A stretch of DNA of 63,925 nt, filler included, from Klebsormidium nitens (Eukaryota > Plantae > Klebsormidiophyceae), in assembly GCA_000708835.1 (NCBI GenBank). It is 5 parts of 5 records of this genome, joined end to end, with 100 filler letters (N's around TTAATTAATTAA, not from the genome) between each part and the next. Parts side by side here need not be neighbours in the genome. Positions count along the whole stretch, not along the records: positions 43,490 to 61,493 come from DF237962.1; 4 more parts are not named here. One strand, 5' to 3'. A program made the translations under genes and the position numbers. A model generated the notes under the pieces. That model was given only the letters and a program-made list of their open reading frames with translations. It was not told the origin of the DNA and ran no database searches. This document shows, in pieces, positions 43,723-60,957 of this stretch. The first letter of the stretch is position 1. Each line of letters starts with the position of its first letter.

Positions 43723-44382
43723 TCAATGCCAGTCCATCGCGAGCGCTATGTTAGGGAACTGCTCCTTCATGATGTCCTTGATCTTCGATGCTATCTCCTT
43801 GTGCTCGCGCTGTGAGCCGTTGCTACTCCTGAGGTCCACGTAATGTATCCAGTCCCTCGCGTTCATGGTCATGTACAGCTTGGTCTGCGTGGACATGGGC
43901 AGGACGAAACGTGCACACTCCTTTGCTATGCCTTTCTCCAATGCCTGCGAATATGTGGCGTACGAATCCTTCCACAGCCTATCCTGCTCCGCCACGAACC
44001 AGGCCTTCACGTCTGGCGGCAGGTCGTCCACGGACGACTGCCTGTTCTTGGGGTCCTGGCTCCTGGCTTCGTACACCACGTTCGCATCGGCCTTTGCATA
44101 CCTGGTGCTGAATTGCTGAAAAGTAGCCGACCTGTGCCTCAGGATCTGCTCTGCTATGGCTCTGCTGGTGGTTATCTCGACCGTCATGGAGGCGGTCTCG
44201 AAGACCGACCAGTGACGATTCTTGATGCAATAACGCAACAGCTTGGCACCGCTCTCGTAGTTCCTCTGGTTCTGGGGATTGGAAACCCGCGCGGCGTGCA
44301 CTATGATGTCCTCCGGCCCTAGCCCCTCCAGTTCGCCCGCGCCTCTGCTGAGTGCCACCAGCTTCACCTCGCAAGCTGCCAT
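43723..44382 (-). CDS. thyX: FAD-dependent thymidylate synthase ThyX
   Basis: AARVSNP, LLRYCIKNRHWSVFE, signature RHRSATFQQFSTRY (RHRx7S), KECARFVLP, RDWIHYVDLRSSNGSQREH; intronless; likely ATG at 44382. Confidence 0.96.
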   Translation of the reverse strand: MAACEVKLVALSRGAGELEGLGPEDIIVHAARVSNPQNQRNYESGAKLLRYCIKNRHWSVFETASMTVEITTSRAIAEQILRHRSATFQQFSTRYAKADANVVYEARSQDPKNRQSSVDDLPPDVKAWFVAEQDRLWKDSYATYSQALEKGIAKECARFVLPMSTQTKLYMTMNARDWIHYVDLRSSNGSQREHKEIASKIKDIMKEQFPNIALAMDWH

Positions 44383-44431
44383 CTTTTTATGTGGACTACA
44401 AAAATACAAATCCAGTGCCTAAACCGACACA

Positions 44432-44758
44432 TCACTTTCGTAGCACGTTCAGAAACATCCCGATCATCTCCCCGTGACCCTCCAAGGGGTATACTCCGCC
44501 TACCGCGTCGGTCAGTCGCCAGCAGGTGTATATCGCCAAGTCTCGGACTCTGGATTCGATACTCAATCTAGGTATGGCAAGAGCCAGCTGCGAGTTCAAT
44601 CTACGCAGACGTTCTCCGTTATCGTCCTTGCAGAGCTCCATCTTGGCAATGATCTCCAGCAGCACCCACACCCGATCTTCCACCGTGGACTCGGGAGACA
44701 GAGTCGAGAATCTCCTTTGGAGCTCGCCCAGGACCTCGGCAGTCGTCCGAAACCACAT
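44432..44758 (-). CDS. Hypothetical protein (virus-like block)
   Basis: Open frame MWFRTTAEVLGELQRRF...MFLNVLRK*, co-oriented with and directly upstream of thyX; no recognised domain. Confidence 0.45.
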   Translation of the reverse strand: MWFRTTAEVLGELQRRFSTLSPESTVEDRVWVLLEIIAKMELCKDDNGERLRRLNSQLALAIPRLSIESRVRDLAIYTCWRLTDAVGGVYPLEGHGEMIGMFLNVLRK

Positions 44759-44838
44759 CCTTGTCTGACGCAAAAGGAAAAAATTGGATCCATGCACCCG
44801 AAGTCGAACTTTCGGACGGTATGCTCGCAGTTTTCCTA

Positions 44839-45000
44839 CGCCCGAAACCGACCGCCCGAGAAATTTCTTTCGGGCGCCACCTTTCGCGAAAATATACTCG
44901 TAGGTTTTTCACGCCCGAAACCGACCGCCCGAGAAATTTCTTTCGGGCGCCACCTTTCGCGAAAATATTCTCGTAGGTTTTCTACGCCCGAAACCGCCCG
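44839..45000. repeat. 73-bp direct repeat (2 full copies plus a partial) with TTTCGCGAAA palindromes, upstream of a TATA box
   Basis: cgcccgaaaccgaccgcccgagaaatttctttcgggcgccacctttcgcgaaaatat at 44839 and 44912; TATAAAA at 45092-45098. Confidence 0.85.
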
Positions 45001-45890
45001 AGAAGTTTCTTTCGGGCGCTTTTCAAGCAGTATGCTCGCGGTATGCCTCAAAGCGAAAGCCCGAGAAGTACTTTTCGGACGGAGATCGCTCTATAAAAGG
45101 AGGTTCCTCTCGTTCTCATTCTCAAAAACGCACTTGGCCTCCCCCTTCCCAACAGCTTGCAAGCAACTCCCTCGCACACAGCATCCTTCTGCCTATCTGC
45201 CCTTTCAGCAGCGGCACAGCTTAGCCGCTTCCTTCTCTCCCAACAGCACCCTATTCTCCCACAGCTCGCTTCCCTTTCCTCCACTCACCAGCCAGCAGCA
45301 CCTCATACTCGCACAGCTCGCTTCCTCCAACACCAGCAGCAACGAGGCCAAGTCGCGTCAGATAGTCACGCCGGCCGGCCTTTTGCCTTGTCCTTGTTTT
45401 CCTTTTTGCTGGTCTGCGCAGACCTCTCTTTTCTTCTTCGTGTCTCTGCAAGCCTGGCCAGGCTGTCGTGTCATGCTGCTCTTCGGCAGCTCTTTTTTCT
45501 GCCGTGTCTTAGCTGGGCTCCCGCTTCTTTGCGGCTCCCCTCCACTGTCTTTGTCTTTCGCTGGCCTCTCGGGCCTTGTAGCTGCCTCGTGCAGCTCCTT
45601 CCGAGAAGTATCAAGGTGAGCATTAGTGAAGTAGGATATCTTGAAGTTACTCCATGATCTGCTTCTCGTTTGCTTTGCGAAATATTTGCATAGAAATGTT
45701 CCCTCTGTTGCTCTTCAAACTCGTTGTTTGCAGCATCCTCGCATCGACTACCTCCTGAGGCTCCGCTCGCATCCGCTAGCTGGCCTCTCGGCCCTTGCAG
45801 CTGCCTTGTGCCGCTCCACACCTATCAATCAGATAAGTTCCCTCTCTTGCTCTCCAAACTTCTGATGTTTGCAGCATCCTGCCTCCTTGA

Positions 45891-46093
45891 GTAGGCTCCG
45901 CTCGCACCCGTCGGGCAGGGTGCCGATAAGAGCGAGCATTTGCGGCTCTGTGGGTAGTGCCGTTTGTCCACGGTACGCATACCACTCTGCCTGTAGGCTC
46001 CGCTCGCACCCGTCGGGCAGGGTGCCGATAAGAGCGAGCATTTGCGGCTCTGTGGGTAGTGCCGTTTGTCCACGGTACGCATACCACTCTGCC
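45891..46093. repeat. 102-bp tandem duplication
   Basis: gtaggctccgctcgcacccgtcgggcagggtgccgataag...accactctgcct begins at 45891 and again at 45993. Confidence 0.92.
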
Positions 46094-46579
46094 TTTTCAC
46101 TCCGTCTGACGATGTCGAAAAGCTGTCCGAGCTACTGATCACTTTTACGCTCCACTCACAGGTCCTGATCATCGAGCCTTTTGACGAGCGGACGCGACTG
46201 GAGATCACTACCCTGTGCCTCGTCTACGATCAGGGGCTCGACACACCATCTATGGTCCAGATTTGAATCAAACGGAGGCAAGTCTCGACTGAGTCTTCGA
46301 ATGCATTCGCTGCTGAGTCATATGCACAGGGCGTTTCGTTCCTTCGTAGCAGCAATGACAAAATCCCCCCTGCCGCCTTTGTCTTAAGAGTAACATGTTT
46401 CTTTTTCTTCTTACAGGATATCGCTCGCCGCATGGAGGAGTCTTCGTTTGCACTCTGAGTCCTTTTTCTGGGCGTGTGCTTTCTATGTGACGTGATTCTG
46501 GGTTCTTTTCTGGGCGTATGGAATGATTTTTCTGTGACTTTTCTTCGACTTCTTGGCTGTCAGTCTGTCTTTCTGTCTC

Positions 46580-46970
46580 TGTCGAGTCGGTCGGTCGGTC
46601 AAGTCCAGTCGAGTCGGTCGGTCGGTCAAGTCCAGTCGAGTCGAGTCGGTCGGTCCGTCGAGTCCAGTCCTGTCCCGTCGGTCAGTCCCACCAGCTATAC
46701 ACACCCTACACTAGACACCCTACACTATACACACCCCTCACCCTCTTACCCACTCCAAATACCCTACTGCCTTACCCTTCCCTCCCACACACCCTACTTC
46801 TTAACCCTTTCCTCCCACATACCCTACTGCCCTTACCTATTCCTCACACCCTAATACTACCCTTACCTATCCCTCACACCCTATACTAACCTTACCTCCC
46901 TCACACCCTATACTACCCTTACATATCCCTCACACCCTATACTTACCCTTACCTATCCCTCAAACACACC
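46580..46970. repeat. (GTCG/GTCCA)n microsatellite followed by a C-rich ~28-bp degenerate tandem repeat (ccttacctatccctcacaccctatacta)
   Basis: Read directly from the sequence; the opposite strand is G-rich. Confidence 0.88.
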
Positions 46971-47163
46971 CGCAGTAGAACCACAGATGGCTGCTGCGAC
47001 CCGCAGCTGGGGTTCGATTCCCCATGTGGTTGGACGACGTTGCACATCGAATTATTGCCGGTTGAGATTACTGGTTGTGAATACGTTTCTTAGTATACTT
47101 TTCTCTCTACATCATGAAGACAACAACCAGCAACCAGCAAGGTTGGGGAACTTAAGGGAGTTC

Positions 47164-47770
47164 AGAGATCGATCTGTCCAATCTAGAAAGATCAGATCGA
47201 TCACCCCTTTTCTTAGGGTCATTGAAAAATGGACCGGTTGCCGGTTGCTGGATGGTGACGTGGCACATCGAAAAGNNNNNNNNNNNNNNNNNNNNNNNNN
47301 NNNNNNNNNNNNNNNNNNNNNNNNNNNNNNNNNNNNNNNNNNNNNNNNNNNNNNNNNNNNNNNNNNNNNNNNNNNNNNNNNNNNNNNNNNNNNNNNNNNN
47401 NNNNNNNNNNNNNNNNNNNNNNNNNNNNNNNNNNNNNNNNNNNNNNNNNNNNNNNNNNNNNNNNNNNNNNNNNNNNNNNNNNNNNNNNNNNNNNNNNNNN
47501 NNNNNNNNNNNNNNNNNNNNNNNNNNNNNNNNNNNNNNNNNNNNNNNNNNNNNNNNNNNNNNNNNNNNNNNNNNNNNNNNNNNNNNNNNNNNNNNNNNNN
47601 NNNNNNNNNNNNNNNNNNNNNNNNNNNNNNNNNNNNNNNNNNNNNNNNNNNNNNNAGAGATCGATCTGTCCAATCTAGAAAGATCAGATCGATCACCCCT
47701 TTTCTTAGGGCCTCTGAAAATTGATCCGGTTGCCGGTTGCTGGGTGGTGACGTGGCACATCGAATTATTG
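47164..47770. repeat. ~110-bp repeat present on both sides of an N gap
   Basis: agagatcgatctgtccaatctagaaagatcagatcgatcaccccttttcttaggg...gtggcacatcgaa at 47164-47273 and 47657-47764, with a few differences. Confidence 0.8.
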
Positions 47771-47952
47771 CCCTGACATGCGGTGGGATGCCCTGTTCCT
47801 CAGGGCACTGGCGTTCCTCCTCTGAAGGCGCCCAGAGAACAAAGTCTCCCTCGTTCTCGTAATGATCATCGAATCCTTCGCTTCGATGTACGCCGATCGG
47901 GTCCATGGGCGCGATATAGGAAGGTCGCACGAAAAGTGACGGGTACGCGGAT

Positions 47953-49551
47953 ATGGACCCTAGATTGCACATCCTGTCGGTCGGCGAAGAGCGCATCGTC
48001 GCTACTTGTCTCGCGGACGTCAGAGACAGGACCAACTCCCTAGCCGCTCCTCTGATCAGGAGTCTCAGTGACAGAACGTGCACGGCCAGGGCCGTAGAGT
48101 TCCGCGACTACATGTTCGACAAGCAGTCTCTGGAGGCCTTGAGCGAGTACCTCTCCACATCTACGAAGCTGGAAAGGATAGTCTTTGGGAACGGCTGTGC
48201 TTCCGAGATATGCATGGCCGGGGCCAGCTTGTCTAGAGTGATCGGTGCGTGCGACAGGGATGTCTTCATAGAGGGCTCCTTGCCGCGGGCGATGGGCCAC
48301 GTGAGCGTCATCCAGGCGGCCGACCCTACCGGGCAGCGATTGCGACGGGCTCTGCTCTCCTTCGAGCCGGAGCACTGGGCGTACGACTGGTCTTCCGACT
48401 CGGAGACGCTGGGTCTCATGCCTTCCGTCACCAACGGAGACTTCGTCTGGACTCGACTACATCCGGATGGCATCCTGACCTTGAACGTCACGGACGAGGA
48501 TATGCTACAAGTGGAGTGGAGCGTTTGCGCGAACGAGCTCAAGAGCACGGCGCTACACTCTGCAGACGACGTCGCCTCATTCGCCAGGGCTCCTCGCACT
48601 TTCGGCTCCCTAGAGAGCTTGACGGTCTCCTCGTGCGGATCCAAGGGACTCACTTACTTCGGACGGCACCTAGCGGCGGAGACGCGCGTGAGACGCATCC
48701 GTTCGGAGGGTCCGTTGGCGGACTCGGTGGCTCTGTTGAAGGGATTCGAGGAAGGGCTCGTCGAGGGGAGACCCTATGAGGCCGAGTGCACGTCGCATCT
48801 CGCTCATGACGGATTGGGCGTGAGGCTCCGCAGGCTGGAGAATCTGTGCTTCCTCAGGTGCTACCGTCTGACTCTGCACGTCCGAGTAGACGGTTGCAAC
48901 GGTTTCGAGAGGAGGCGCTTCGACGAGACCATGACGTTCCTGCTCGGGTGGTTCCCGAAGCTGGAGGCCCTGGAGGTGGACATCGGCGGAGACTCTATGG
49001 GCGGCCCTTACCAAGGGTGCGTCCCCATAGGGCGCTTCGCAGCTGCGGTGCCGCGGACGTTGAAGGAGCTGCGGCTCGCTTTCGGTGGGGCGTCCACGCT
49101 CTTCTGTGCCGCGAGTCGGCTCCACGAGTTCTTAGAGGCAGCTCGATGCCGGTTGCGGTATCTCAGCATCGAGGGCTGGGCAGCCGGAGCGGAGGCCCTA
49201 TCCAGAGTGGTACGGATCGAGGGTCTCGAGCGACTTTGCATACCTCAGGCTTGCACCTCCGTAGCAGGCTTGAGGAACGCTTTACGGAGACGGATGAGAG
49301 AGCTCGACGTGGGAATCTCGCTGCTGGGCAGGAGGGATATAGCAGAGTTCGCTCGCCTCGTCCAGAGCTTCGCCAGACCCACCCGTCCGAGCAAGCTGCT
49401 GTTGCGGAACGGCGTCCGAAGCGAGATGATGGGGGAGCTAGGACGAGCTCTGAGGGCAGCAGGATGCTTCGACTACGTCTACACGTCTGCCGATGAGAAG
49501 ACGATCACGATCTGGCTCGCTCTGCCCGAGGAAGAAAAAGATTGCCAATGA
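47953..49551 (+). CDS. Intronless 532-aa protein with degenerate leucine-rich (RNI-like) repeats
   Basis: Repeated LxxLxL motifs: KLERIVF, SLESLTVSSC, RLENLCF, FPKLEALEVD, TLKELRLAF, RLRYLSIEG, GLERLCIP, RMRELDVG. Confidence 0.6.
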   Translation: MDPRLHILSVGEERIVATCLADVRDRTNSLAAPLIRSLSDRTCTARAVEFRDYMFDKQSLEALSEYLSTSTKLERIVFGNGCASEICMAGASLSRVIGACDRDVFIEGSLPRAMGHVSVIQAADPTGQRLRRALLSFEPEHWAYDWSSDSETLGLMPSVTNGDFVWTRLHPDGILTLNVTDEDMLQVEWSVCANELKSTALHSADDVASFARAPRTFGSLESLTVSSCGSKGLTYFGRHLAAETRVRRIRSEGPLADSVALLKGFEEGLVEGRPYEAECTSHLAHDGLGVRLRRLENLCFLRCYRLTLHVRVDGCNGFERRRFDETMTFLLGWFPKLEALEVDIGGDSMGGPYQGCVPIGRFAAAVPRTLKELRLAFGGASTLFCAASRLHEFLEAARCRLRYLSIEGWAAGAEALSRVVRIEGLERLCIPQACTSVAGLRNALRRRMRELDVGISLLGRRDIAEFARLVQSFARPTRPSKLLLRNGVRSEMMGELGRALRAAGCFDYVYTSADEKTITIWLALPEEEKDCQ

Positions 49552-49561
49552 CAGTAGGAAG

Positions 49562-50116
49562 ATGCATCTCTTCTCTACTTCTACCGTCTTGGTCGTAGCC
49601 CGCGTTCTCTTGTTCGCATGCGTCACCGGAGGGGTCATGTGGTGGTTCTACCTGAAGGAGGAGAAAAGGACCAAGCGCCCTGTAGGAGTGGTAGGATCGT
49701 GCGATACGGAGAGAGTCGTGCAGCCCCAGGAATCGGAAAAGACTCCGGAGTTGCAGGATATACCCCCTGGTCACGAAAAATACGCTAATGTATTCGAGAA
49801 GCATGCCGAGAGGTTCGACGATGCATACGATAAGATCCGGGAGGAGACACTCTGCCTGGCCAAGAGGAGGCGGCAGTATTCCATCATGTTGGACGCTTCG
49901 TCCAGGTGCATGCGTTGCCTCTACAATATTCGCATGTGGATGCACAACGACCTCGCCATGGAGGAACGCATGCGCACCTTCGAGCTCATATGCGACGACT
50001 ACTTCGCCAGATGCCTCAGGCATGCGTATGATCGTTCGTACACTCCTGCCGACGAGACGCTGATCCCGCGGCGTTGGAATAGGAGGTGGTCGGATCCATC
50101 TCCGAGCGTCGCGTGA
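49562..50116 (+). CDS. Hypothetical protein with an N-terminal transmembrane helix
   Basis: MHLFSTSTVLVVARVLLFACVTGGVMWWFYL hydrophobic stretch. A diverged paralogous fragment at 52472-52532 differs mostly at synonymous positions, which supports coding status. Confidence 0.65.
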   Translation: MHLFSTSTVLVVARVLLFACVTGGVMWWFYLKEEKRTKRPVGVVGSCDTERVVQPQESEKTPELQDIPPGHEKYANVFEKHAERFDDAYDKIREETLCLAKRRRQYSIMLDASSRCMRCLYNIRMWMHNDLAMEERMRTFELICDDYFARCLRHAYDRSYTPADETLIPRRWNRRWSDPSPSVA

Positions 50117-50164
50117 AAGAAATATTCTGAGTTGAGATACGGATCTGGTCTATACCGTCCGAGA

Positions 50165-50244
50165 TGCTGCGTTGGCATACTGCTGCGTTGGCGTGCTGCG
50201 TTGGCGTGCTGCGTTGGCATATATTGCTGCAGCTTCTGCAGCAT
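50165..50244. repeat. Four copies of TGCTGCGTTGGC plus a tgctgcag-ctt-ctgcagca hairpin upstream of tnpA
   Basis: Copies at 50165, 50181, 50194 and 50207; hairpin at 50226-50244. Confidence 0.9.
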
Positions 50245-50317
50245 TGACTAGAAAACACGGCCTATAAAGAAGGCATTAGGCACCATGTGCGTCTCATTCT
50301 AAATCTTTCTTCTCGAC

Positions 50318-50992
50318 ATGTACAGTAGCTTTCGGAGAGCTAAGGACCATTTTGGCGTCTCCTCTAGCACCCCGCGTAGATGGGCTAATGAAGGAAAGAT
50401 CGCCACCAAGCGCACCGCAGGCAACCACCGCGTCTTCTCCATCCCCAGCCTCGAAGAGAAAGAAACTCGGGCATGCATCGCCTACTGTAGGGTCAGCTCC
50501 TCCAAGCAGCGCGACGACCTGCAGCGACAGAGGAGGTTTCTATCTGACCAACTCCCCAGACACGAGAGTGTCTCGGACGTGGGCTCGGGGATCAACTTCG
50601 AGAGACCAGGACTGCTATCCATTCTGGAACGAGTCCTACAGGGCAGAGTATCGGAGGTGGTGGTTGCCAGCAAGGACAGACTGTGCCGTTTCGCATTCGA
50701 GCTCGTGGCCTGGATATTCGAACGTCAAGGGACACGGATCGTGGTTCTCGATACGCGAGATAAGTCACCGAGCGAGGAGTTCACAGAGGACATCCTGGCC
50801 ATCATGCAAGTATTCTCTTGTCGATGGAACGGGAAGAGGCGCTACAGGGGTCCACAAGAGCGGGGGCGCGATAAAAGAAGCGGAGGTGGCTCTAGCATTC
50901 CCCTCGAGGTGCAGGAAGATAAGGGCCTTCCCGACGGGACATCAGCGGCTAATCCTGAGGAAGATGGTGGGAGGGTGCCGGAAACTGTATAA
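50318..50992 (+). CDS. tnpA: IS607 serine recombinase/transposase TnpA (N-terminal MerR-like wHTH plus serine-recombinase catalytic domain)
   Basis: FGVSSSTPRRWANEGKIATKRTAGNHRVF (HTH); IAYCRVSSSKQRDDLQRQ (catalytic Ser codon at 50495); DVGSGINFERPGL; DRLCRFAFEL; EEFTEDILAIMQVFSCRWNGKRRY. Confidence 0.95.
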   Translation: MYSSFRRAKDHFGVSSSTPRRWANEGKIATKRTAGNHRVFSIPSLEEKETRACIAYCRVSSSKQRDDLQRQRRFLSDQLPRHESVSDVGSGINFERPGLLSILERVLQGRVSEVVVASKDRLCRFAFELVAWIFERQGTRIVVLDTRDKSPSEEFTEDILAIMQVFSCRWNGKRRYRGPQERGRDKRSGGGSSIPLEVQEDKGLPDGTSAANPEEDGGRVPETV

Positions 50993-52325
50993 CGAGACGG
51001 TGGCCATGATCCGGGACAGGCGTCTCCCGTTTGCGAACGTAGAAGCATTCGAGGAGGCAGAGCGACGGCGGAAGACCAGGCTTGAGGATAGAAAAAGGAA
51101 GAAGGCGGAGGATGATGGCTCCGAGTTCGAAGAGGTGCACTACAAGGGGACGAGTCACCCTTGGATGGACAAGGTGTACGTCAAGAACTTTCTGGTGCCC
51201 GAGGACAGCGACTTCATGAAAGCGAACCCCTACCTGAAAGAGATACCCAAGGAGACCAGACAGCAGGCGGTGGAGGATGCCATTGAGGCGTACAAGGCTG
51301 CCTTCAGCAACATGGCAGTGGGGAACATCAGCAACTTTGAGGTGGGCTTCAGGAAGAAGAAAGACCCGCGTTGGTCTATCGCGGTCGCCTTCAATGCGGT
51401 TTCGGGGAGCAGGTTCTGGCCACGCAAGGTCAAGGATTTCGGAGAGCTGGTCGTGGCGGAGCCACGGCACCTGAGGAAGCGCTACGGGCGGGAGCTGAAG
51501 ATCTCGAAGGATCAGCTCGGGCGCTACTGGATGGTCATCATGAACGACAAAGGACCCAAGGCTACGACGGAAGAGGCGGCGAAGGGCGTCGAAGAGCTGC
51601 GCGAGTCGACCCGCGAGAACCAAGCGGGCGACAAGCCGGTGGCTGCCATCGACCCGGGGATTCGGACTCGACACACCATCTACATGACGGACGGGCGGCT
51701 CGTGGAAGTGGAAAATCAGGACATACAGAGGATCGTGCGTCTCTGTCGGCACGTGGACAGGTGCATATCGGCTCTGAGCAAGGGAGAGCTCGCGGTGTCC
51801 AAGAAGCACCTGAAGAGGAACCCGAAAGCATCCGTGATGGCCCTCTTCGACCACTATCGGCCTTCGAAGAAAGTCCAGGGCCAGCATGTTGTGCGTCTGA
51901 GTGGCGAGGACAAGAACAGGATACGACAGAAGATGCACCAACTGAAGGCGAAGATAGAGAGCTTGAAGAACGAGATAGACGACCAGACGGTGGCCTACCT
52001 GCTTCGCGAATGCAAGACGGTCCTGTTGCCCCCATTCGACATGCACTCCATGTCCACAAGGCTGCACCACAAGACGGCGAGGGCCATGATGCAGTGGAGA
52101 CACGGGACGTTCAAGACCAAGCTCGTGGAAAGAGCTCCCGGCCGGGGGGTGCGGGTCATGATAGTGTCGGAGGCATACACCAGCAAGACCTGCGGGGCGT
52201 GCGGGTGGCTGCATCCCAGTCTGGGTGGGAGCAAGCTATACGTCTGTCGAAGGTGTGGGGTAGAGATGGACAGGGACCACAACGGTGCCCGGAACATATT
52301 CCTGAGAGCGATTAGGTCAGAATGA
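50388..52325 (+). CDS. tnpB: IS607-type TnpB / Fanzor2 RNA-guided endonuclease (645 aa from the first ATG)
   Basis: RKIRAFPT...GGCRKLYN; RuvC-I AAIDPGIRT (D at 51651); VLLPPF where the canonical Glu would be, with the alternative Glu in VSEAYTSKTC (52170); zinc finger CGACG...CRRCG; RuvC-III MDRDHNGARNI (D at 52275). No internal stop. Confidence 0.95.
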   Translation: MKERSPPSAPQATTASSPSPASKRKKLGHASPTVGSAPPSSATTCSDRGGFYLTNSPDTRVSRTWARGSTSRDQDCYPFWNESYRAEYRRWWLPARTDCAVSHSSSWPGYSNVKGHGSWFSIREISHRARSSQRTSWPSCKYSLVDGTGRGATGVHKSGGAIKEAEVALAFPSRCRKIRAFPTGHQRLILRKMVGGCRKLYNETVAMIRDRRLPFANVEAFEEAERRRKTRLEDRKRKKAEDDGSEFEEVHYKGTSHPWMDKVYVKNFLVPEDSDFMKANPYLKEIPKETRQQAVEDAIEAYKAAFSNMAVGNISNFEVGFRKKKDPRWSIAVAFNAVSGSRFWPRKVKDFGELVVAEPRHLRKRYGRELKISKDQLGRYWMVIMNDKGPKATTEEAAKGVEELRESTRENQAGDKPVAAIDPGIRTRHTIYMTDGRLVEVENQDIQRIVRLCRHVDRCISALSKGELAVSKKHLKRNPKASVMALFDHYRPSKKVQGQHVVRLSGEDKNRIRQKMHQLKAKIESLKNEIDDQTVAYLLRECKTVLLPPFDMHSMSTRLHHKTARAMMQWRHGTFKTKLVERAPGRGVRVMIVSEAYTSKTCGACGWLHPSLGGSKLYVCRRCGVEMDRDHNGARNIFLRAIRSE

Positions 52326-52492
52326 GCCCCATATGAACCCGGCGTGCCGGGGGATGGGTCGGAGAGATAGCTCCTAGTCTCAGAAGGTTTGAGAGACTTG
52401 GCACCAGGCGAGAGGTAGGAGATCGTACGGTGCACAGAGACTTGAGCAGGATTGCTTAGGTTTCAACTATCGGCGGCGATACTCAACCATGT
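52326..52492 (+). ncRNA. Candidate omegaRNA scaffold plus guide (boundaries inferred; may begin inside the tnpB 3' end)
   Basis: Hairpins cccat..cccgg-cgtg-ccggg..atggg (52328-52358), ggag-agatag-ctcc (52361-52374), agtctc..gagact (52376-52398) and tgagca-ggat-tgctta (52443-52458) lie between the tnpB stop and the right junction. This is the position where TnpB/Fanzor omegaRNAs are encoded. Confidence 0.6.
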
Positions 52493-52532
52493 TGAACGCT
52501 TCCTCTAGATGCATGCGTTGCCTGTACAACAT
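52472..52532 (+). pseudogene. 3' fragment of a paralog of the 49562-50116 gene, truncated by the IS607 element and by a gap
   Basis: RRYSTMLNASSRCMRCLYN versus RQYSIMLDASSRCMRCLYN; 50/62 nt identical by hand count (52471-52532 versus 49868-49929). Confidence 0.8.
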
Positions 52533-52585
52533 NNNNNNNNNNNNNNNNNNNNNNNNNNNNNNNNNNNNNNNNNNNNNNNNNNNNC

Positions 52586-53277
52586 TCAGACAAGACCAAG
52601 CCCGCCTGGGTGGACGCCGGGGTCGCGCACGACTTCTCCGAGTTCGCCGTCTCCGGGAAGAACCTCTGCGGCATCAACCCCGGGCAGGGCACAAGGTCTT
52701 CTGCACCGCCGACTGGACCGCGGCAGCGCCCGTCTTCAAACCGCTGCAGGGAGACGGCATGCTCCGCAACCTGTCCCTCTCGGGAACGAGCCTGTGCGGA
52801 GCGGACGCCCGTCCCGGCGTAGACAACATCTTCTGCAGCAACGACTTCATTTCGAAACCATTGACTCAAGTACAAGGCAGCGGCAACGTGACCGCTCAGG
52901 GGAAGGGCAGGCTCTGCGTCGTGGCCAAGGACCAACGAGTGTTCTGTACCGACTCTATCGTCCAAAACCCCGTCTGGACCAAGAGAGGGGACCTCGCCAT
53001 AGACCTCGCCATGAACGAGTCGGGCGGGATATGTGCTTTGAACCCCGACGGGACCATCTTTTGCCAGCCGGACCTGACGTCGGGGAAATGGGTGGCCACG
53101 AACGTCGCCGAAAAGAAGAACGTGAACCTCGCCACGAATATTCATGGGACGAAGCTCTGCATCTTCAACAGCGATAAGGCCCCCGCTTACTGCCATGACA
53201 ACGTCTTTGCAGGCGACAAGGCGGGTTGGTATGGGTTGGCAGCTGCTGGACAACGGTTCGGGTTGGAAAAAGTGTAG
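52586..53277 (+). pseudogene. Tectonin/lectin-like beta-propeller repeat protein with two Cys per ~40-aa repeat; 1-nt frameshift near 52685; 5' end in gap
   Basis: Repeats PAWVDAG..FAVSGKNLCGINPG|HKVFC; PVFKPL..LSLSGTSLCGAD..NIFC; ..GRLCVVAKDQRVFC; PVWTK..GGICALNPDGTIFC; KWV..TKLCIFNSD..AYC. The first repeat is in a different frame from the rest. Confidence 0.55.
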
Positions 53278-53281
53278 GCCC

Positions 53282-54022
53282 TCATGCCGTCAGAGCTGGC
53301 GCGGGTGCTGGAACGTGGGTAGTGGGTTCGAGCGTGCGATCGACCCAGAGAGGGTTGAGCCCGGCTAGGACTCCTCCCAGTAGAGGGCCGACGATGAAGA
53401 CCCAGATGTGAGTCCATTGTTTCCGATCGTTGCTCCCGGATGCGACCGCCGTTCCGAGGGATCTCGCGACGTTTATAGAGCAGCCGTCTAAGGGAAGGAG
53501 TGCCAGATGACAGACCAGGACCGCGCCACCGATAGCGATGGGAGCGTGTCCGTACAACTTGGTAGCGGCGTAGGAAGTGTTGAGCACGACCGTTACGAGG
53601 AAAGCCGTCGCCAGTATCTCCGCCAACAGGGCTTGCCACAGGGCGTGTCCATCTAGGACGTGATTGACTCCTTTGCCGCCCGCGTCGTAGAGGTCCCAAT
53701 TGCTCACGAGCCTCGCGTAGCAGGCGCCGCATATCGCCCCTATGACCTGGGCGACGATATACAACGCAGCCTTCTCTATAGATATCATCCTCTGCAACAA
53801 GAAAGCCAGAGTCACGCTCGGATTCAAGTGAGCTCCCGAGATGGAGCCGAAAGCGTACGCTAAGGTCCCTATAGTGCCTCCAAATACGGAAGCGACACCC
53901 AGAGGCGCGAGAATGCTGCCGTTATCATAGATAGGGAGAGCGGGGTAATTCGTGAGAGACAGTGTGATGATGAAGAGGAAAATGCCACTTCCGACGAACT
54001 CGGCCGCTACCGCCTTGTACAT
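53282..54022 (-). CDS. Aquaporin (MIP family), intronless; NPS and NVA in place of the two NPA motifs (alternative start at 54073)
   Basis: AEF motif (VAAEFVGS), ISGAHLNPSVT, YIVAQVIGAICG, LLAEILATAFLV, HLALLPLDGCSINVARSLG, WVFIVGPLLGG. Confidence 0.93.
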   Translation of the reverse strand: MYKAVAAEFVGSGIFLFIITLSLTNYPALPIYDNGSILAPLGVASVFGGTIGTLAYAFGSISGAHLNPSVTLAFLLQRMISIEKAALYIVAQVIGAICGACYARLVSNWDLYDAGGKGVNHVLDGHALWQALLAEILATAFLVTVVLNTSYAATKLYGHAPIAIGGAVLVCHLALLPLDGCSINVARSLGTAVASGSNDRKQWTHIWVFIVGPLLGGVLAGLNPLWVDRTLEPTTHVPAPAPALTA

Positions 54023-54218
54023 GATGGCGACCGATACCTGATAAACTACAAGCGAGAATATTATGCCGGCCATACGCCCGAGGCCGCGGCAGGCATCGTT
54101 CGCCGGCTTAGGGCAAGCAGGCCTCCCCTTGCCGGTGCTATAGGATTGCGGTCGATGCACATGGTGCGTTTCGCGAATATCTTCGCGGTAAGATATATCG
54201 AGTATCGAGTACCTTTTG

Positions 54219-55069
54219 ATGGACGAAGCGAGGATCCAACGGAACATAGAGGAGGCGATAACGCTCTTGAGACGTGGCCTCTCTGGGGACGACATCCTCG
54301 CGATCTTCCAGGCCCGAAACGAAGGTCGCGGACCCACGTACGCTCTGCACCCCGAGGCTTGGGCCACCGTGATGCGGCGTGCGAAGCGGAGAGCTTCTCG
54401 CCTAGATCCCATCCCCGTCCCGACTGCAGCTCCTGCAGGGCCGAGTGAGCTATTTCAGCTGGACGAAGCGAGGATCCAACGGAATACCGAAGAGGCTATA
54501 ACGCTCTTGAGACGTGGTCTCTCTAGGGACGACATCTTCGCGATCTTCCAGGCCCGAAACGAAGGTCGCGGACCCACGTACGCTCTGCACCCCGAAGTCT
54601 GGGCCACCGTCATGAGGCGTGCGAAGCGGCGAGCTTCTCGCTTAGGTCCCATCCCCGCCCCGACTGCAGCTCCCGTCCCTCCACGACCTGTACCGAGACC
54701 ATTTGTACCTCCCGTCTCTCCACGACCTGTACCGAGACCACAGGTACCTCCCGTCCCTCCACGACCTATACCGAGACCACAAGTACCTCCCGTCCCTCCG
54801 CGACCTGTACCGAGACCACAGGTACATCCCGTCCCTCAGCGACCTACACCGAGACCTCCCGTAGCTCCCAACCAGGATCAGAATAGACCAGCTACCCTGT
54901 TCGACTGCCACGACGTCCCTGGTGATGGGAATTGCTTTTACTCGGCCGTCGCGGTCGCGTTGGCAAACAGGCCGCTTCCTCTACCTCAACTACGAGAGAG
55001 GGCTATGCAGTTGCGCAACGCCGGCCTCGAATACTTTGATAGGTTCCAAGAGGCGCTCTTCGTCAATGC
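54219..55069 (+). CDS. OTU-domain protein copy 1 (two helical ~60-aa repeats, Pro-rich repeats, start of OTU); truncated by gap
   Basis: MDEARIQRNIEEAITLLRRGLS...RRAKRR x2; (PPVPPRPVPRPQV)n; LFDCHDVPGDGNCFYSAVAVAL. Confidence 0.75.
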
Positions 55070-55089
55070 NNNNNNNNNNNNNNNNNNNN

Positions 55090-56493
55090 GTGATGCGGCG
55101 TGCGAAGCGGCGAGCTTCTCGCCTAGATCCCATCCCCGTCCCGACTGCAGCTCCTCCACAGGCAAAGCCGACTGAGCTATTTCAGCTGGACGAAGCAAAG
55201 ATCCAACGGAACACCGAAGAGGCTATAACGCTTTTGAGACGTGGTCTCTCTAGGGACGACATCCTCGCGATCTTCCAGGCCCGAAACGAAGGTCGCGGAC
55301 CCACATACGCTCTGCACCCCGAAGTCTGGGCCACCGTCATGAGGCGTGCGAAGCGGCGAGCTTCTCGCTTAGGTCCCATCCCCGCCCCGACTGCAGCTCC
55401 CGTCCCTCCACGACCGATACCGAGACCATTTGTACCTCCCGTCTCTCCACGACATATACCAAGACCACAGGTACCTCCCGTCCCTCCACGACCTGTACCG
55501 AGACCATTTGTACCTCCCGTCTCTCCACGACATATACCGAGACCACAGGTACCTCCCGTCCCTCCACGACCTATGCCGAGACCACAGGTACCTCCCGTCC
55601 CTCCACGACCTATGCCGAGACCACAGGTACCTCCCGTCCCTCCGCGACCTATACCGAGACCTCCCGTAGCTCCCAACCAGGATCAGAATAGACCAGCTAT
55701 CTTGTTCGATTGTCACGACGTCCCTGGTGATGGGGATTGCTTTTACTCGGCCGTCGCGGTCGCGTTGGCAAACAGGCCGCTTCCTCTACCTCAACTGCGA
55801 GAGAGGGCTATGCAGTTGCGCAACGCCGGTCTCGAATACTTTGATAGGTTCCAAGAGGCGCTCTTCGTCAATATTTTTGGTCTGCCCTCTGGTGACAGAA
55901 ACCGAGTGCGTCGCGGACGACGCGCTACCTTCATGTATCCGCAATGGGCGAACCACGTCCAGATAGAATGTGTCGCCCGCGCTATGCGGTGTCGGATACG
56001 CGTGTTCGGCATGTGGCCCGATGTATATAGTCTCGCCGTAAGACTCGCAGAACCTTTGACGCTGGAACAACTGGACCTCCTGTGCTCGACGGTAGACGAT
56101 GGGCAACTACGGAGGCGGAGAAGTCATTACGTAAACGATGATCCGAACAACTACGACAGAACCATTTCATTGATAAACTGGACGGACACACACTTTGGAG
56201 TTGTCTTGCCACACGTGAGGGGCAGGCCGAGGCAACGTGTGAGTGCTAGCGGGAATATACCCCCTGCGAATGTCAGTTATGGAGAGGCTCTGCAGGTGAC
56301 ACAAAGGCTCGCTGGACGCGAGGCGATACTCGTGAGGGAGAGGCGGGAGAGAGCGGACCGAGAAAGACAGATGAGGGGCAGGAGTGCGGCAGGAGTACGG
56401 CAGAGTGCTACGGTCAGTGCCAGGTATGCGAACACGAGTAGCAACGAGGCTCTGGCACTCGCCTTACAGGAGTTGGAATTCTCAGAAGATTGA
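55090..56493 (+). CDS. OTU-like cysteine protease (deubiquitinase) copy 2 with helical repeats, Pro-rich linker and C-terminal ubiquitin-binding-like motif; 5' end in gap
   Basis: DVPGDGDCFYSAV (Cys at 55738), LRERA, WANHVQIECVARAMRCRIRVF, ISLINWTDTHFGVV (His at 56191), C-terminal SNEALALALQELE. Confidence 0.85.
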   Translation: MMRRAKRRASRLDPIPVPTAAPPQAKPTELFQLDEAKIQRNTEEAITLLRRGLSRDDILAIFQARNEGRGPTYALHPEVWATVMRRAKRRASRLGPIPAPTAAPVPPRPIPRPFVPPVSPRHIPRPQVPPVPPRPVPRPFVPPVSPRHIPRPQVPPVPPRPMPRPQVPPVPPRPMPRPQVPPVPPRPIPRPPVAPNQDQNRPAILFDCHDVPGDGDCFYSAVAVALANRPLPLPQLRERAMQLRNAGLEYFDRFQEALFVNIFGLPSGDRNRVRRGRRATFMYPQWANHVQIECVARAMRCRIRVFGMWPDVYSLAVRLAEPLTLEQLDLLCSTVDDGQLRRRRSHYVNDDPNNYDRTISLINWTDTHFGVVLPHVRGRPRQRVSASGNIPPANVSYGEALQVTQRLAGREAILVRERRERADRERQMRGRSAAGVRQSATVSARYANTSSNEALALALQELEFSED

Positions 56494-56525
56494 CTCTTTT
56501 TCTTCTGATCGAATCGTAGGATAGG

Positions 56526-58472
56526 ATGACCACGGCCACCATCAAGACGAGGAAACTGCTCGTAGATAGCCCGGACGCGGATGACTTTCTGATCGTCTCC
56601 AACGGTGTGCAACTGGTGACGAACGTGCTCGTAGACGGGTCCCTCTCCGCGTCGGTCCCCGTGATGACCTTGCAAGCAGGAACGATTCAGTGCTTCGGCA
56701 GCAACGGCGACGCCTGGTTCCTCTCGCGTGCGGCGGACGGGACGGTCTCGCTCGGGCAGAACGTAGCGGGGTCTCGCCGTGCACTGGCATCGCTCGCGTG
56801 CTCAGTGGACGACGGTGCATCTGGATTGGGAACGTTGAGCGTCAGGTCTCTACAGAATGTCGACCAGGCCGGTCGTTACCCATTTCGGACGCGCATTGAC
56901 ACCGACAAGAGTCTGGTGACGCAGTGCTCCACCGACGGCACGGCTTGGACGACGATACGGAGAGATGCTGCTTCCATCGCTACCTTTGCGCAATCCATCC
57001 TCCCCGCATCGGGCAATCTCAACGTGGGGACCGGCAGCAACCGCTGGCTTGGACTGTATGCTTCCAACGTAGATGCGGATACGATCGCATGTGGGGCCGC
57101 GACGTTCTCGTGTAATCTATCGGTTTCGGGCGATGCTTCGGTCGGGGGGTCGTTGCAGGCGAGCAGTGCCGTGGTGGGAGGGAGTTTAGCGGTGACGGGT
57201 CCCGTCGCTCTATCGAACGCTCTGACGGGCACCTCTGCGACGTTTTCTAGCAACGTGACCATCGCTGGATCGTTCTCATATTCCAACCTCGCACTCAGTG
57301 GGAGTTTATCCGTGGCTGGTCTCACTACTATTTCAAACACTCTGAGAGCCACTTCGGCGACGTTCTCCAGTAATGTGACCGTGTCTGGAACTTCTACTCT
57401 CTCGAGCGATGCGAACATCAGAGGAGCCCTTGCTGTGACCGGGCCACTCACTCTTTCCAGCGCCCTTTGGGGAAATTCGGCGTCTTTCTCAGGTAATCTA
57501 AGCGTTTCTGGAGCTACGACTCTCTCCAGCAATACTACGGTGGGAGGAAGCTTGGCAGTAACCGGCCCCGTGACTCTGTCCAGCACGCTAGGAGGCACTT
57601 CTGCGACTCTCTCTAGCAACCTGACCGTCTCTGGATCTACGACTGTATCGGGCGCTCTGGGCGGAACAACAGCAGCTTTTTCCAGCAACCTCAGCGTCTC
57701 TGGAGTTACGACGCTATCGGGCGCTCTGGGAGGCAGCTCTGCTACCTTTTCGAGCAATCTGACCGTCTCTGGTACTTTTACTCTCTCCAGCAATGCGACG
57801 GTAGGCGGAAGCTTGTATGTCAGCGGGCCCGTCACCCTCTCTAGTACCCTGGGAGCCACGTCGGCTACTTTTTCCAGCAACATGAGCGTCGCCGAAATAA
57901 CCTCTGGAACCCTATCAGCGAGCGGACCGGTCACTCTCTACAACACCCTCGGAGCCACCTCCGCCACGTTTTCGAACAACGTGTCGATTGGCGGCACCCT
58001 GTCGGTAGCGAGCAATCTGGCGGTCACCGGCCCCGCCACCTTTGCATCCAACATCACCATCTCAAACACCGATCCGATCAACTCTCACAAGACGTGGGCC
58101 TCTTGGACCCCATCTTCTGATTCTAACGCGACGTTAACGACTTTCTTCGCGAGATACACGTCGATCAATAAGAGAGTCACGGTCGCTTACTCGCTGAGTT
58201 TCACTGTCGCGTCGTCCGTGGCCAGTACCAGCATCTCCCTGCCTCCAGGACATTCAGTTGCGTATTCGGCACAACGCACGCAGATCTTCAGCAAGAACGG
58301 CGGGTCGAACATCTACGTGACAAGCTACGGGAGTATCACCGTTCCGACCGCAGGGACTGCGACAGGTCTGGTCACGGCCGACAGCACTACTTCTCGGCTA
58401 GTATTTGCCCTCACGAACTTCTTGGCGGGTACCTGGACTGCATCAGGTACCTTGGATTATGAGATCGCTTGA
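56526..58472 (+). CDS. Virion fibre / tail-fibre-like protein with Ser/Thr/Gly-rich beta repeats
   Basis: GNLNVGTGSNRWLGLYASNV motif; more than 10 repeats of (A)TFSSNLxVSGxxTLS / GGSLxVTGPVTLSS; C-terminal WASWTP...ARYTSINKRVTV domain. Confidence 0.7.
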   Translation: MTTATIKTRKLLVDSPDADDFLIVSNGVQLVTNVLVDGSLSASVPVMTLQAGTIQCFGSNGDAWFLSRAADGTVSLGQNVAGSRRALASLACSVDDGASGLGTLSVRSLQNVDQAGRYPFRTRIDTDKSLVTQCSTDGTAWTTIRRDAASIATFAQSILPASGNLNVGTGSNRWLGLYASNVDADTIACGAATFSCNLSVSGDASVGGSLQASSAVVGGSLAVTGPVALSNALTGTSATFSSNVTIAGSFSYSNLALSGSLSVAGLTTISNTLRATSATFSSNVTVSGTSTLSSDANIRGALAVTGPLTLSSALWGNSASFSGNLSVSGATTLSSNTTVGGSLAVTGPVTLSSTLGGTSATLSSNLTVSGSTTVSGALGGTTAAFSSNLSVSGVTTLSGALGGSSATFSSNLTVSGTFTLSSNATVGGSLYVSGPVTLSSTLGATSATFSSNMSVAEITSGTLSASGPVTLYNTLGATSATFSNNVSIGGTLSVASNLAVTGPATFASNITISNTDPINSHKTWASWTPSSDSNATLTTFFARYTSINKRVTVAYSLSFTVASSVASTSISLPPGHSVAYSAQRTQIFSKNGGSNIYVTSYGSITVPTAGTATGLVTADSTTSRLVFALTNFLAGTWTASGTLDYEIA

Positions 58473-58511
58473 ATGGTCCCTCCTTTTTTCACGTCTCTCT
58501 GATAGCAGCCC

Positions 58512-59693
58512 ATGTCTTCATCCGTGTACTGCCCCACCTTGCACACCAGCTACGGCTCGGTCGCACCGCTGTCCCCATTCGGCGAGAAGGTCGGCGTGCA
58601 TAAGACGAATATCTTCAATCTGAAGCCTAGCTACGGCCTCAGCGTCATACGAGACGACACGTACACGACCGGCAACGGCACCGTCACTGGAACTTTGGGG
58701 CAGCCAGAATTCGTCCTGACGGCTCCCGCATCGTCCTCAGCTAGCCTGGTGAGTGCGGAGCGTGGTCGCTATATCGCCGGCTTCTCCGCCGAAGTAGGGA
58801 TCGGGGTGCGGGTGCCACAAGCCCTGACGGGCACTCAGACTTTTCAGTGGGGATACACAGACAGTAGCTTCCAGAACGGCTTCTACTTTCAGATCTCTGC
58901 CTCAGGGCTGTCTGCCAACATCGTGCGCAACGGGGTAGTCAGCAGCATCCCAGCCTCCTCCTTCAATTGCGACCGTCTCGATGGCACCGGCCCCAGTGGC
59001 CAGATCTTGGACATGACCAAAGGCAACATCTGGCACATCGTCTACTCGTGGTATGGTTACGGAGCGGTCAACTTCCAGCTGGTCTGCACCGATACTTTCG
59101 GTAATCAGTTCGTGCAGTCGCTCCACCGTTGGGCGCCGTCCGGTCAGACTTCCACGATGTTTCCGAACCTCAACATAAGTACGTTGCTGAATAACACCGG
59201 AAGCGGCACCATCAATGCCTACGTCGCCGGCCGCCAGTATTCAATATACGGGGAGGAGAGCACGACTCACCGCGTCACCTCCGGTTACAACCAGGTCACC
59301 GTGACTTCGGCGACCTGGAAGCCCATAGTCTCCTTCCGTCGCAAAACCGGTTGGACGCACTGCGGCGTTCGTCTGATCTCCTACGATGCATTCGCGAATC
59401 AGGATGCATACCTGCAGGTGCGGGTGACGTCTACGCTGACGGGAGCGTCCTGGACTACCGTACAAGATTCTCTCGATGCGGAGACCTGCCTGCAGGTCGA
59501 CACGTCCGCGACCGCCATCAGCGGGGGTCTGGTGCTATACACGACCGGCGTGAGCAGCGCAAAGGCCGGCGGATCGACCGACGTGCTCGACATTTACCTC
59601 AACGAGACGGACATCATCACGGTATGCGCAAAGTGCATCACCGGCTTCAGCGGCGCCATCACTGCAGTGCTGCGAATGGAAGAACTGTGGTGA
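58512..59693 (+). CDS. Phage/giant-virus-type structural protein with a DGTGPSG motif (paralog 1)
   Basis: SPFGE...AERGRY...WGY..NGFYF...FNCDRLDGTGPSGQILDMTKGNIWHIVYSWYGYGAVNF. The family is recalled from phage virion proteins; no search was run. Confidence 0.65.
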   Translation: MSSSVYCPTLHTSYGSVAPLSPFGEKVGVHKTNIFNLKPSYGLSVIRDDTYTTGNGTVTGTLGQPEFVLTAPASSSASLVSAERGRYIAGFSAEVGIGVRVPQALTGTQTFQWGYTDSSFQNGFYFQISASGLSANIVRNGVVSSIPASSFNCDRLDGTGPSGQILDMTKGNIWHIVYSWYGYGAVNFQLVCTDTFGNQFVQSLHRWAPSGQTSTMFPNLNISTLLNNTGSGTINAYVAGRQYSIYGEESTTHRVTSGYNQVTVTSATWKPIVSFRRKTGWTHCGVRLISYDAFANQDAYLQVRVTSTLTGASWTTVQDSLDAETCLQVDTSATAISGGLVLYTTGVSSAKAGGSTDVLDIYLNETDIITVCAKCITGFSGAITAVLRMEELW

Positions 59694-59739
59694 GACAGCG
59701 GAGCTTCTTTTTCTCGGGTACACTCAGGAGGGCACACCC

Positions 59740-60957
59740 ATGTCGCTCATTCCGGGAAACGCCACCGTGGTAGGGAATCTGGCCGTGGCGGGCAACATAA
59801 CTTCTTTCACCAATCAAGTTCCGACGGACTCCTGCGGCGACATCCGGACGGTCGAAAAGACCAACATCATCGACCTCAACTCTACCTGCGGCCTCACTCA
59901 GCTGCGCGACGCGGTGACCACGACCGGCACCGGCACTTTGACGGGCACCGCAGGGCAGCCGGAGTTCGTACTGACGCTCACGGGCTCCGGCGACTCCGTA
60001 CTCCTGCAGAGTGCCGAGCGCGGCCGCTTCGTAGCGGGGTACACGTTCGAGGTATGCCTTATCCTGCGCTCCGTCGTCGGTGCCGCCGCCTGGGGGGCGG
60101 GGCAGTATCTCAAGGTCGGCTACTATGATGGCACCAACGGCTTTTACTTCCTCGTCGACTCGACCGGCCTGAACGCGTGCACGATGCGCAACGGCGTGGA
60201 GACCAGGACCAATCAGGCAAACTTCAACGTGGACAAGATGGACGGGACCGGCCCGAGCGGGCTGGTCTTCGGTATGACCACCGGGTGCATGTTTAAGATC
60301 ATCTATGGCTGCTACGGCTACGGGGCGTTGGTCTTTGCTTCTTGCCCGGTCACTTCTGCAGGCGTGCAGTATCTGCAGCACATGCACCGCATGGTCCCCG
60401 GCACGCAGACCTACTCTATGTACCCCAACCTGCCGCTGTCTATCTACGCCACCAACGGCACGACCGCCACGAGCCGCACGTTGTACATCGCCGGTCGTCA
60501 GTATTCCATGATCGGACACTGGCTGCCTCACAAGCGCAACAACGCGGCGTACGTTCTCAACCGCGGAGGGGTCTCCACGACCTTCTTACCCATCATCAGC
60601 CTGCGCCGCAAGAGCAATTACCTCCACTGCCCCGTACGCCTAAAGGGCATCGACGTCCTCTCCACCACCGACTGTCTGATCCAGGTCCGCGTTGCGACGA
60701 CCGTTACCGGCGGCACCTGGACGGATCTACAGGATCAGCCAACCACCGAGAGCGCTCTGCAGTGCAACACGAGTGCGACCGCCGTGTCGGGAGGGATCGT
60801 GATCTACGTGGAGATGCTCCAGGCGGGGCGCATGCTGAACGACAAGGACCAGGTAGAGTTCGACTTTAGGGACAACGACGTGCTTACGTTATGTGCGCGC
60901 ACCTTGACCGGCTTCACGAGCATCAATTCTGTCCTGCGCGTCGGAGAAGGATTCTGA
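59740..60957 (+). CDS. Phage/giant-virus-type structural protein with a DGTGPSG motif (paralog 2)
   Basis: Collinear with paralog 1: KTNIIDL, GQPEFVLT, SAERGRF, NGFYF, DKMDGTGPSG, YGYGA, AGRQYS, SATAVSGG. Confidence 0.65.
   Translation: MSLIPGNATVVGNLAVAGNITSFTNQVPTDSCGDIRTVEKTNIIDLNSTCGLTQLRDAVTTTGTGTLTGTAGQPEFVLTLTGSGDSVLLQSAERGRFVAGYTFEVCLILRSVVGAAAWGAGQYLKVGYYDGTNGFYFLVDSTGLNACTMRNGVETRTNQANFNVDKMDGTGPSGLVFGMTTGCMFKIIYGCYGYGALVFASCPVTSAGVQYLQHMHRMVPGTQTYSMYPNLPLSIYATNGTTATSRTLYIAGRQYSMIGHWLPHKRNNAAYVLNRGGVSTTFLPIISLRRKSNYLHCPVRLKGIDVLSTTDCLIQVRVATTVTGGTWTDLQDQPTTESALQCNTSATAVSGGIVIYVEMLQAGRMLNDKDQVEFDFRDNDVLTLCARTLTGFTSINSVLRVGEGF

Follow-up and report, generated by a model that had tools for sequence, protein, structure and literature searches.

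A predicted guide-RNA scaffold at the right end of an IS607-type element with a Fanzor2-type nuclease gene

The question raised by this locus is what is encoded between the stop codon of a TnpB-like nuclease gene and the right end of its transposon, and at which base a guide-RNA scaffold would give way to a guide. The locus lies in a 63,925-nt stretch of DNA, fillers included, from the Klebsormidium nitens assembly GCA_000708835.1 (hereafter, the window), within the piece 43490-61493 (DF237962.1), a draft scaffold with a GC content of 55-60% and N runs at 47276-47655, 52533-52584 and 55070-55089. An earlier note on this DNA had read the region downstream of the stop as an omegaRNA scaffold followed by its native guide. 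We consider it very probable that 52326-52473 has two roles, forming the right end of an intact IS607-type transposon and encoding a guide-RNA scaffold (omegaRNA/reRNA). The neighbouring ORFs are tightly packed, mostly without Pfam matches, and include genes for a ThyX thymidylate synthase (43723-44409, minus strand; Pfam 5.7e-51), an aquaporin-type MIP protein (53282-54412, minus strand; Pfam 2.6e-51) and an OTU-like protein. The proteins closest to this ThyX are metagenome sequences (83% and 72%).

Two overlapping genes on the plus strand make up the coding part of the element. The tnpA gene (50318-50992) encodes a 224-aa IS607-type serine recombinase with an N-terminal MerR-like HTH, identified by translation and by Pfam matches to Resolvase (E = 3.6e-19, residues 54-181) and MerR HTH (7.9e-05, residues 12-40). 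The nuclease ORF, downstream of tnpA, runs from its first ATG at 50388 to a TGA at 52323-52325 (645 aa) and matches Cas12f1-like_TNB (5.3e-18) and HTH_OrfB_IS605. A tnpA gene and a TnpB-like ORF on the same strand between 50318 and 52325 represent the gene pair of an IS607-family element, and by its gene content 50318-52473 is an intact IS607-type element consisting of tnpA, a TnpB-like nuclease gene and a non-coding module; both genes read as intact in the window copy. The folded part of the nuclease starts near 50886, and the ~166 codons before it are read in the +1 frame of tnpA. The AlphaFold model gives the core a pLDDT of 80-95, and residues 1-160 are mostly below 50. Matches to PDB sequences were distant only (TnpB, Cas12f and mimivirus L79) and confined to the C-terminal part.

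Upstream of tnpA, a TATA-like box, CCTATAAA (50261-50268, plus strand), is followed ~23 nt on by TCTCATT (50292-50298), and both are invariant in the alignments of all close copies of the element (contigs L001-L005). The pair looks like a shared TATA-plus-initiator promoter. In three distant copies (L008-L010), ATATAAAG stands 8-15 nt before the ATG. An inverted repeat, 50284-50300/52319-52335, was judged to be due to chance.

The motifs of the nuclease were compared with those of the known families. The long ORF has DPG as its RuvC-I motif (residues 422-424), with no variation in the family alignment, and the RuvC-II glutamate is shifted to six residues before the zinc finger (E595-AYTSKT-C602xxC605; E-x6-CxxC), which is followed by the second CxxC and D630. 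D422, E595 and D630, the catalytic residues, are all preserved, as are both CxxC pairs. DPG together with the shifted glutamate is the signature that defines Fanzors and the 'pro-Fanzor' TnpBs (10.1101/2023.08.09.552727). The published Fanzor2 pattern, DPG-x(120,160)-E-x6-CxxC-x(12,18)-CxxC-x(4,8)-D, did not match the window nuclease because a ~40-aa insertion extends the DPG-to-Glu spacer to 170 residues against a maximum of 160; the pattern matched once the spacer limit was raised. These motifs assign the nuclease to the Fanzor2 type, apart from ordinary bacterial TnpBs.

A word-based protein search yielded relatives of two kinds, four close ones at 68-78% identity and a set at 33-41%. In total, eleven metagenome contigs (L001-L005 and L007-L012) carry the same element as the window: five close copies with 72-77% nucleotide identity over 2.2 kb, and six distant ones with 37-41% amino acid identity. 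The genes next to the relatives include those for mRNA triphosphatase, TBP, Pox_VLTF3, DNA methylases and DUF58xx/59xx families, and one relative element sits on a 1.02-Mb contig; from these neighbours and the size of this contig, the setting of the relatives looks like that of giant viruses. The closest prokaryotic relatives found were the cyanobacterial 'pro-Fanzor' IS607 TnpBs, at 22-30% identity (Microcoleus, Anabaenopsis and others). A scan of viral contigs with a single protein found no relative, and an exact 30-nt scaffold pattern found no match in the same contigs. The only match of a 24-nt pattern in the metagenome contigs (L006) was attributed to chance, as it showed no other similarity and was missed by the covariance model described below.

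Several of the relatives are decayed. Both tnpA and the nuclease gene are frameshifted in L003/L004 and L005, and the nuclease of L001 is truncated before RuvC-III; the guide-RNA modules of L001, L003, L004 and L005 are intact despite this decay and score as high as that of the window. Since these relatives are decayed, conservation of the module is no proof of current activity. In addition, the 148-nt module occurs by itself in L001 (L001:2730-2878), at 93% identity to its sibling in the full element 4 kb away. The left region of this copy differs, with three CCGGAAACG-type repeats, a TATAAAA box and CTCTCATT, and a pair similar to the TATA-like box and TCTCATT is found 5' of it (L001:2318-2346). 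This copy may be a non-autonomous or decayed element that has kept only the RNA, and its occurrence indicates that the module is a unit of its own that can persist alone.

To place the right end of the element, we compared it with its flank and with the other copies. The earlier note had set the start of homology to a paralogous flanking gene exactly at GG 52472-52473, and this held: blastn of 52420-52532 against 49400-50320 aligned 52472-52532 with 49869-49929 (82% over 61 nt, E = 4.6e-14) and returned no other significant match. The matched gene, gene A (49493-50116, plus strand; ORF list and translation), lies complete to the left of the element and encodes a predicted membrane protein of 207 aa without a Pfam match; the right flank (52472-52532, plus strand) is an in-frame fragment of a paralog of it, with RRYSTMLNASSRCMRCLYN against RQYSIMLDASSRCMRCLYN in the same reading frame, and is ended by the N run 52533-52584. 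None of the five bases upstream of the GG matches the paralog. A tblastn extension of the similarity upstream of the GG, to 52402, was rejected: only 7 of 22 residues match, and the bases concerned are common to the 11 elements, which stand in unrelated flanks.

The other copies place the end at the same bases. By blastn, similarity between the element and its close relatives (72-77% identity) extends from 50288/9 to 52473/4, and the aligned right ends of the close copies are conserved to TTTCAAC[C/T]AT[C/T]GG and unrelated thereafter. The six distant elements likewise end in C[C/T]ATCGG, 142-204 nt from the conserved hairpin loop. Thus the GG represents the last conserved bases in 12/12 copies, the window included, and the right end reads (U/C)CGG in 11 of the 12; none of the 11 related elements ends elsewhere, the outcome that would have told against the proposed junction. 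IS607 inserts at GG, with crossover at this dinucleotide (PMC6188088; PMC13565253). Two independent lines, the conserved end of the copies and the start of paralog homology, therefore agree that GG 52472-52473, common to the element end and the target, is the right junction at an IS607 core.

The left end of the window copy was not placed by pairwise blastn or by alignment of the upstream regions, which placed those of L002, L005 and L004; these three start after GG. Elements of the IS607 family are characterized by ends in GG, insertion at a GG and the lack of both target duplication and terminal inverted repeats. Candidate left-end GGs in the window are 50141-50142 and 50147-50148, upstream of four tandem 13-nt direct repeats found by repeat search (TGCTGCGTTGGCRTR; 50165-50225, plus strand). 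These are candidates for the subterminal repeats of IS607 elements, in which short direct repeats are found at the ends (PMC6188088). The left flank consists of the 3' end and downstream spacer of the complete paralog, and the right flank of the middle of another paralog; whichever GG is taken, the 5' half of the interrupted gene is missing. Because the flanks come from two different paralogs, a single insertion cannot be their source. The locus points to an adjacent deletion, recombination between copies, or chimeric assembly of repeated sequence, and the 'native guide' may thus not be the original partner of the window copy.

This bears on the alternative that survives best, namely, that the omegaRNA gene is genuine and the copy and its locus do not form a native working pair, the guide having been brought in by rearrangement or chimeric assembly. 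The identity of the left flank, the 3' end of a complete paralog in place of the 5' half of the interrupted one, favours it, as do the N gaps, one 59 nt downstream of the GG and others elsewhere, and the fact that the element and the flanking gene family are both repeated sequence. On the other side, tnpA and the nuclease are intact, and the flank begins at the GG, which in the paralog is preceded by AGGAGG, a plausible IS607 target. We regard this alternative as possible, if on balance doubtful. The scaffold prediction does not rest on the flank and is unaffected by this problem.

We then analysed the module itself as an RNA. The ~145 nt of stacked hairpins described earlier downstream of the nuclease stop codon correspond to 148 nt (52326-52473, plus strand) with five hairpins: SL1 (52328-52358), the pseudoknot hairpin (stem 52361-64/52371-74), SL3 (52376-52398), SL4 (52399-52436) and SL5 (52437-52464). 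The fold has an MFE of -55 kcal/mol (z = -2.97), and none of 200 dinucleotide shuffles was as stable; the opposite strand folds more weakly (z = -2.03). Covariation of the full structure was assessed in the six close sequences only, among which RNAalifold gave 43 consensus pairs, 8 of them with compensatory changes. In the model-fitted alignment, 98.8% of the cells pair, against 29-42% when the partners are slid by 1-3 columns. The number of compensatory pairs was reached by 4/500 shuffles, and that of compensatory cells by 0/500. About 30 cells of the alignment are G:U, which pair only on the plus strand.

A covariance model built from the six close copies, the check that the earlier note had called for, gave a single strong match in the piece, at 52320-52473 (181.6 bits). 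Among the distant relatives it detected L009 only, and weakly (13.7 bits), so these copies were compared through their hairpin and pseudoknot motifs instead. A cmscan of 49400-52533 against all 4227 Rfam families, RAGATH-18 included, gave no match at E <= 1. Taken together, the position between the nuclease stop and the right end, the sharp boundary, the compensatory changes and the guide-adjacent pseudoknot found in all 11 other elements support the earlier assignment of the region as a predicted omegaRNA scaffold.

The short hairpin and its pseudoknot are the most informative part of the structure. In the hairpin loop AGAUAG (52365-52370, plus strand), GAUAG (52366-52370) is complementary to CUAUC (52467-52471, plus strand), which stands directly 5' of the GG. 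GAU[A/G]G pairs with C[U/C]AUC in 12/12 copies, and the pair 52369:52468 is A:U in six copies and G:C in the other six, with no exception; G52369/C52468 is the natural variant of L002, L004 and L005. One distant copy, L007, was shifted by one column in the MAFFT alignment, which accounted for all apparent pseudoknot mismatches, and none remained after correction. The middle stem pair 52363:52372 is A:U, U:A, C:G or G:C across the copies. The motif GAURG/CYAUCGG is not general, being found in 1/65 further viral loci and, without covariation, in 1/62 bacterial loci, and the cyanobacterial 'pro-Fanzor' loci differ in this from the window. [quoted passage not shown] As judged by pairing and position, this scaffold has the layout known from the guide RNAs of IS607 TnpB and Fanzor2.

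These features allow a different reading of the 148 nt to be weighed, in which they serve only as the DNA right end, a site of TnpA binding and synapsis, the hairpins being incidental and without a guide-RNA role. Several TnpA dimers bind to short repeats at the ends of IS607 (PMC6188088), and the module reaches exactly to the recombination GG; the DNA-end and guide-RNA roles do not exclude each other. What makes a DNA end alone very improbable is that substitutions keep the pairing (98.8% of cells, against about 40% with slid partners, and 8 compensatory pairs), that the ~30 G:U cells pair only on the plus strand and that the pseudoknot covaries in 12/12 copies. Furthermore, no repeats matching the left-end 13-nt repeats occur at the right end, and the right end is conserved between copies that carry their own, different repeats at the position of those of the window. 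Hardly credible is a signal in the nuclease mRNA for 3'-end formation or termination, such as giant viruses use at transcript ends: the module does lie directly 3' of the stop codon with stable helices, and its relatives are in giant-virus-like contigs, but a single hairpin would do for this purpose, whereas here a 148-nt, five-helix module with a long-range pseudoknot is conserved over 37-78% protein identity, ends exactly at the junction and also occurs alone.

With the guide-RNA scaffold as the preferred reading, the border between scaffold and guide can be considered. The earlier note had ended the scaffold near 52471 and begun a 20-nt guide at the GG. The GG as the boundary stood, and the exact end did not: by analogy with ISXfa1, in which deletion of both junction Gs from the RNA abolished activity (10.1101/2023.08.09.552727), the GG counts as scaffold, which is taken to end at 52473, and the proposed guide started two bases early. 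The programmable guide probably starts at 52474, the GG being the scaffold counterpart of the TAM, and activity would probably be lost if the scaffold were cut at 52471. The predicted native guide is CGGCGAUACUCAACCAUG... (52474-52494, plus strand), the first non-conserved sequence past the junction, and would be 16-21 nt long; known lengths are 17 nt in ISXfa1, 14-15 nt in Fanzors and 21 nt for the test guide of ApmFNuc (10.1101/2023.08.09.552727, PMC13565253, PMC10530073).

The putative TAM was derived from the flanks of the copies. Where the left flank could be placed, its sequence is GAAGG (L002), GAGGG (L004 and L005) or TAGG(G) (L001), and in the intact paralog the site matching the insertion point reads AGGAGG followed by CGGCAG. 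ISXfa1, with a 144-nt scaffold and a 17-nt guide, uses a GGG TAM and leaves its right-end CGG uncut (10.1101/2023.08.09.552727), and bacterial IS607 TnpBs use AGGAG or GAGGG (PMC11061315). By comparison with these systems, we infer a TAM of the purine-GG or GAGGG-like type, and the intact right junction would be protected by its C (CGG). The sequence had also been described as directly usable for reprogramming; this overreaches, the TAM being a putative one, the flank adjoining an assembly gap and the locus being no simple insertion.

From the characterized systems, we further infer how the element would be transcribed, bound by its protein and returned to its site. The RNA would derive from the 3' untranslated region of the nuclease transcript and continue through the GG into the flank. 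The Fanzor2-type nuclease (50388-52325) would bind the scaffold, with the short hairpin and its GAUAG-CUAUC pseudoknot, right before the guide, as the core. The ~16-21 nt after the GG would then direct cleavage of the empty site left by TnpA excision, that is, a G-rich motif ending in GG followed by guide-matching sequence, and the element would be copied back by repair of the break. The CGG of the intact right junction is presumably not accepted as a TAM; purine-GG stands in the left flanks of the relatives.

Among the closest known systems is ApmFNuc/ApmFz2 (Acanthamoeba polyphaga mimivirus, L79; PMC10530073; PDB 9b0l), which, like the window, has an IS607 element encoding TnpA and a Fanzor2-type nuclease and lies in a giant-virus setting such as that suggested for the window's relatives. 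A conserved, structured non-coding RNA 3' of its ORF extends past the right end into the guide and its N-terminal region is disordered, and the same is predicted for the window. The preferred TAM of ApmFNuc is G-rich (NGGG; PMC10530073) and matches its insertion site, and that of the window would be G-rich as well. The two differ in that the detectable similarity (E = 6.5e-10) is confined to the C-terminal RuvC/zinc-finger part, in module length (148 nt in the window against ~200) and in the N-terminal extension (~166 aa against 64). ISXfa1 of Xylella fastidiosa resembles what is predicted for the window in its scaffold of ~144-148 nt and guide of ~17 nt, in the pseudoknot and in a right-end CGG set against a purine-rich GG(G) TAM; in contrast to the window, with the DPG and shifted glutamate of the Fanzor lineage, it is bacterial with a canonical RuvC-II glutamate, and its RNA sequence is unrelated to the window scaffold. 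Stem-loops and pseudoknots are also shared with the RAGATH-18-derived reRNAs such as that of ISFba1 (PMC11061315), whose AGGAG/GAGGG TAMs resemble the left flanks described above, whereas ISFba1 has a scaffold of 187 nt, a protein of ~390 aa and a canonical active site. The cyanobacterial 'pro-Fanzor' IS607 TnpBs (10.1101/2023.08.09.552727) have the same arrangement of tnpA and a +1-frame nuclease.

This arrangement was analysed across the loci. The nuclease frame, which is +1 relative to tnpA, has no stop from upstream of or close to the tnpA start to its own end, both in the window (overlap 50388-50992) and in every one of the eight other intact relatives (L001, L002 and L007-L012). For this frame, shuffling of synonymous codons in tnpA gives an expectation of 2.7-5.4 stops and a probability of no stop of 0.0004-0.024 per locus; the +2 frame contains 5-14 stops against 8-15 in the shuffles. 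The +1-frame peptides of distant pairs have an identity of 0.33-0.44, where 0.22-0.26 would be expected (z 4-7). In two motifs, codons of tnpA vary between Val and Leu (GTG, CTG and TTG) and the overlapping Trp is kept, and the third positions of the neighbouring tnpA codons are nearly fixed. The conservation of the +1 frame thus shows signs of selection beyond the constraint of tnpA alone. The same open frame was found in 15/19 further giant-virus loci and in 33/42 bacterial loci, mostly cyanobacterial.

At five distant loci (L008-L012), tnpA starts with ATGTATG, which places a nuclease-frame ATG 4 nt past the tnpA ATG (locus position 2997; 3048 in L012). The window group has lost this second ATG, reading ATGTAC instead, and its nuclease frame has a first ATG at +70. 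We see about even chances that IS607 elements throughout the pro-Fanzor/Fanzor2 clade, in cyanobacteria as in giant viruses, make a long nuclease isoform of ~600 aa whose first 170-200 residues are overprinted on the +1 frame of tnpA, mostly disordered with a few invariant motifs (PFW, LP and SWF) and, in the window copy, an NLS-like KRKK, both proteins starting within a few to ~70 nt of each other on one transcript. The predicted disorder of residues 1-160 beside a well-folded core in the AlphaFold model is consistent with this proposal. An adaptation to eukaryotic leaky scanning was rejected as the sole explanation, since the cyanobacterial elements have the same frame. No description of an overlapping tnpA/nuclease frame was found in the Fanzor and IS607 literature searched. 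If it holds, the overlap could change the annotation and expression of these nucleases.

Judged against the known systems, the window module is a well-supported new example of the known class of IS607 TnpB/Fanzor2 guide RNAs. The comparison gives this Fanzor2-type clade a base-resolved, comparatively validated scaffold with its pseudoknot and a refined guide start, details on which a trial of the enzyme as a compact programmable nuclease would depend, and about a dozen natural variants show which positions of the scaffold tolerate change. For the biology of the family, the element would represent another TnpA/TnpB homing partnership in giant-virus-like genomes, of a kind that would not surprise a specialist.
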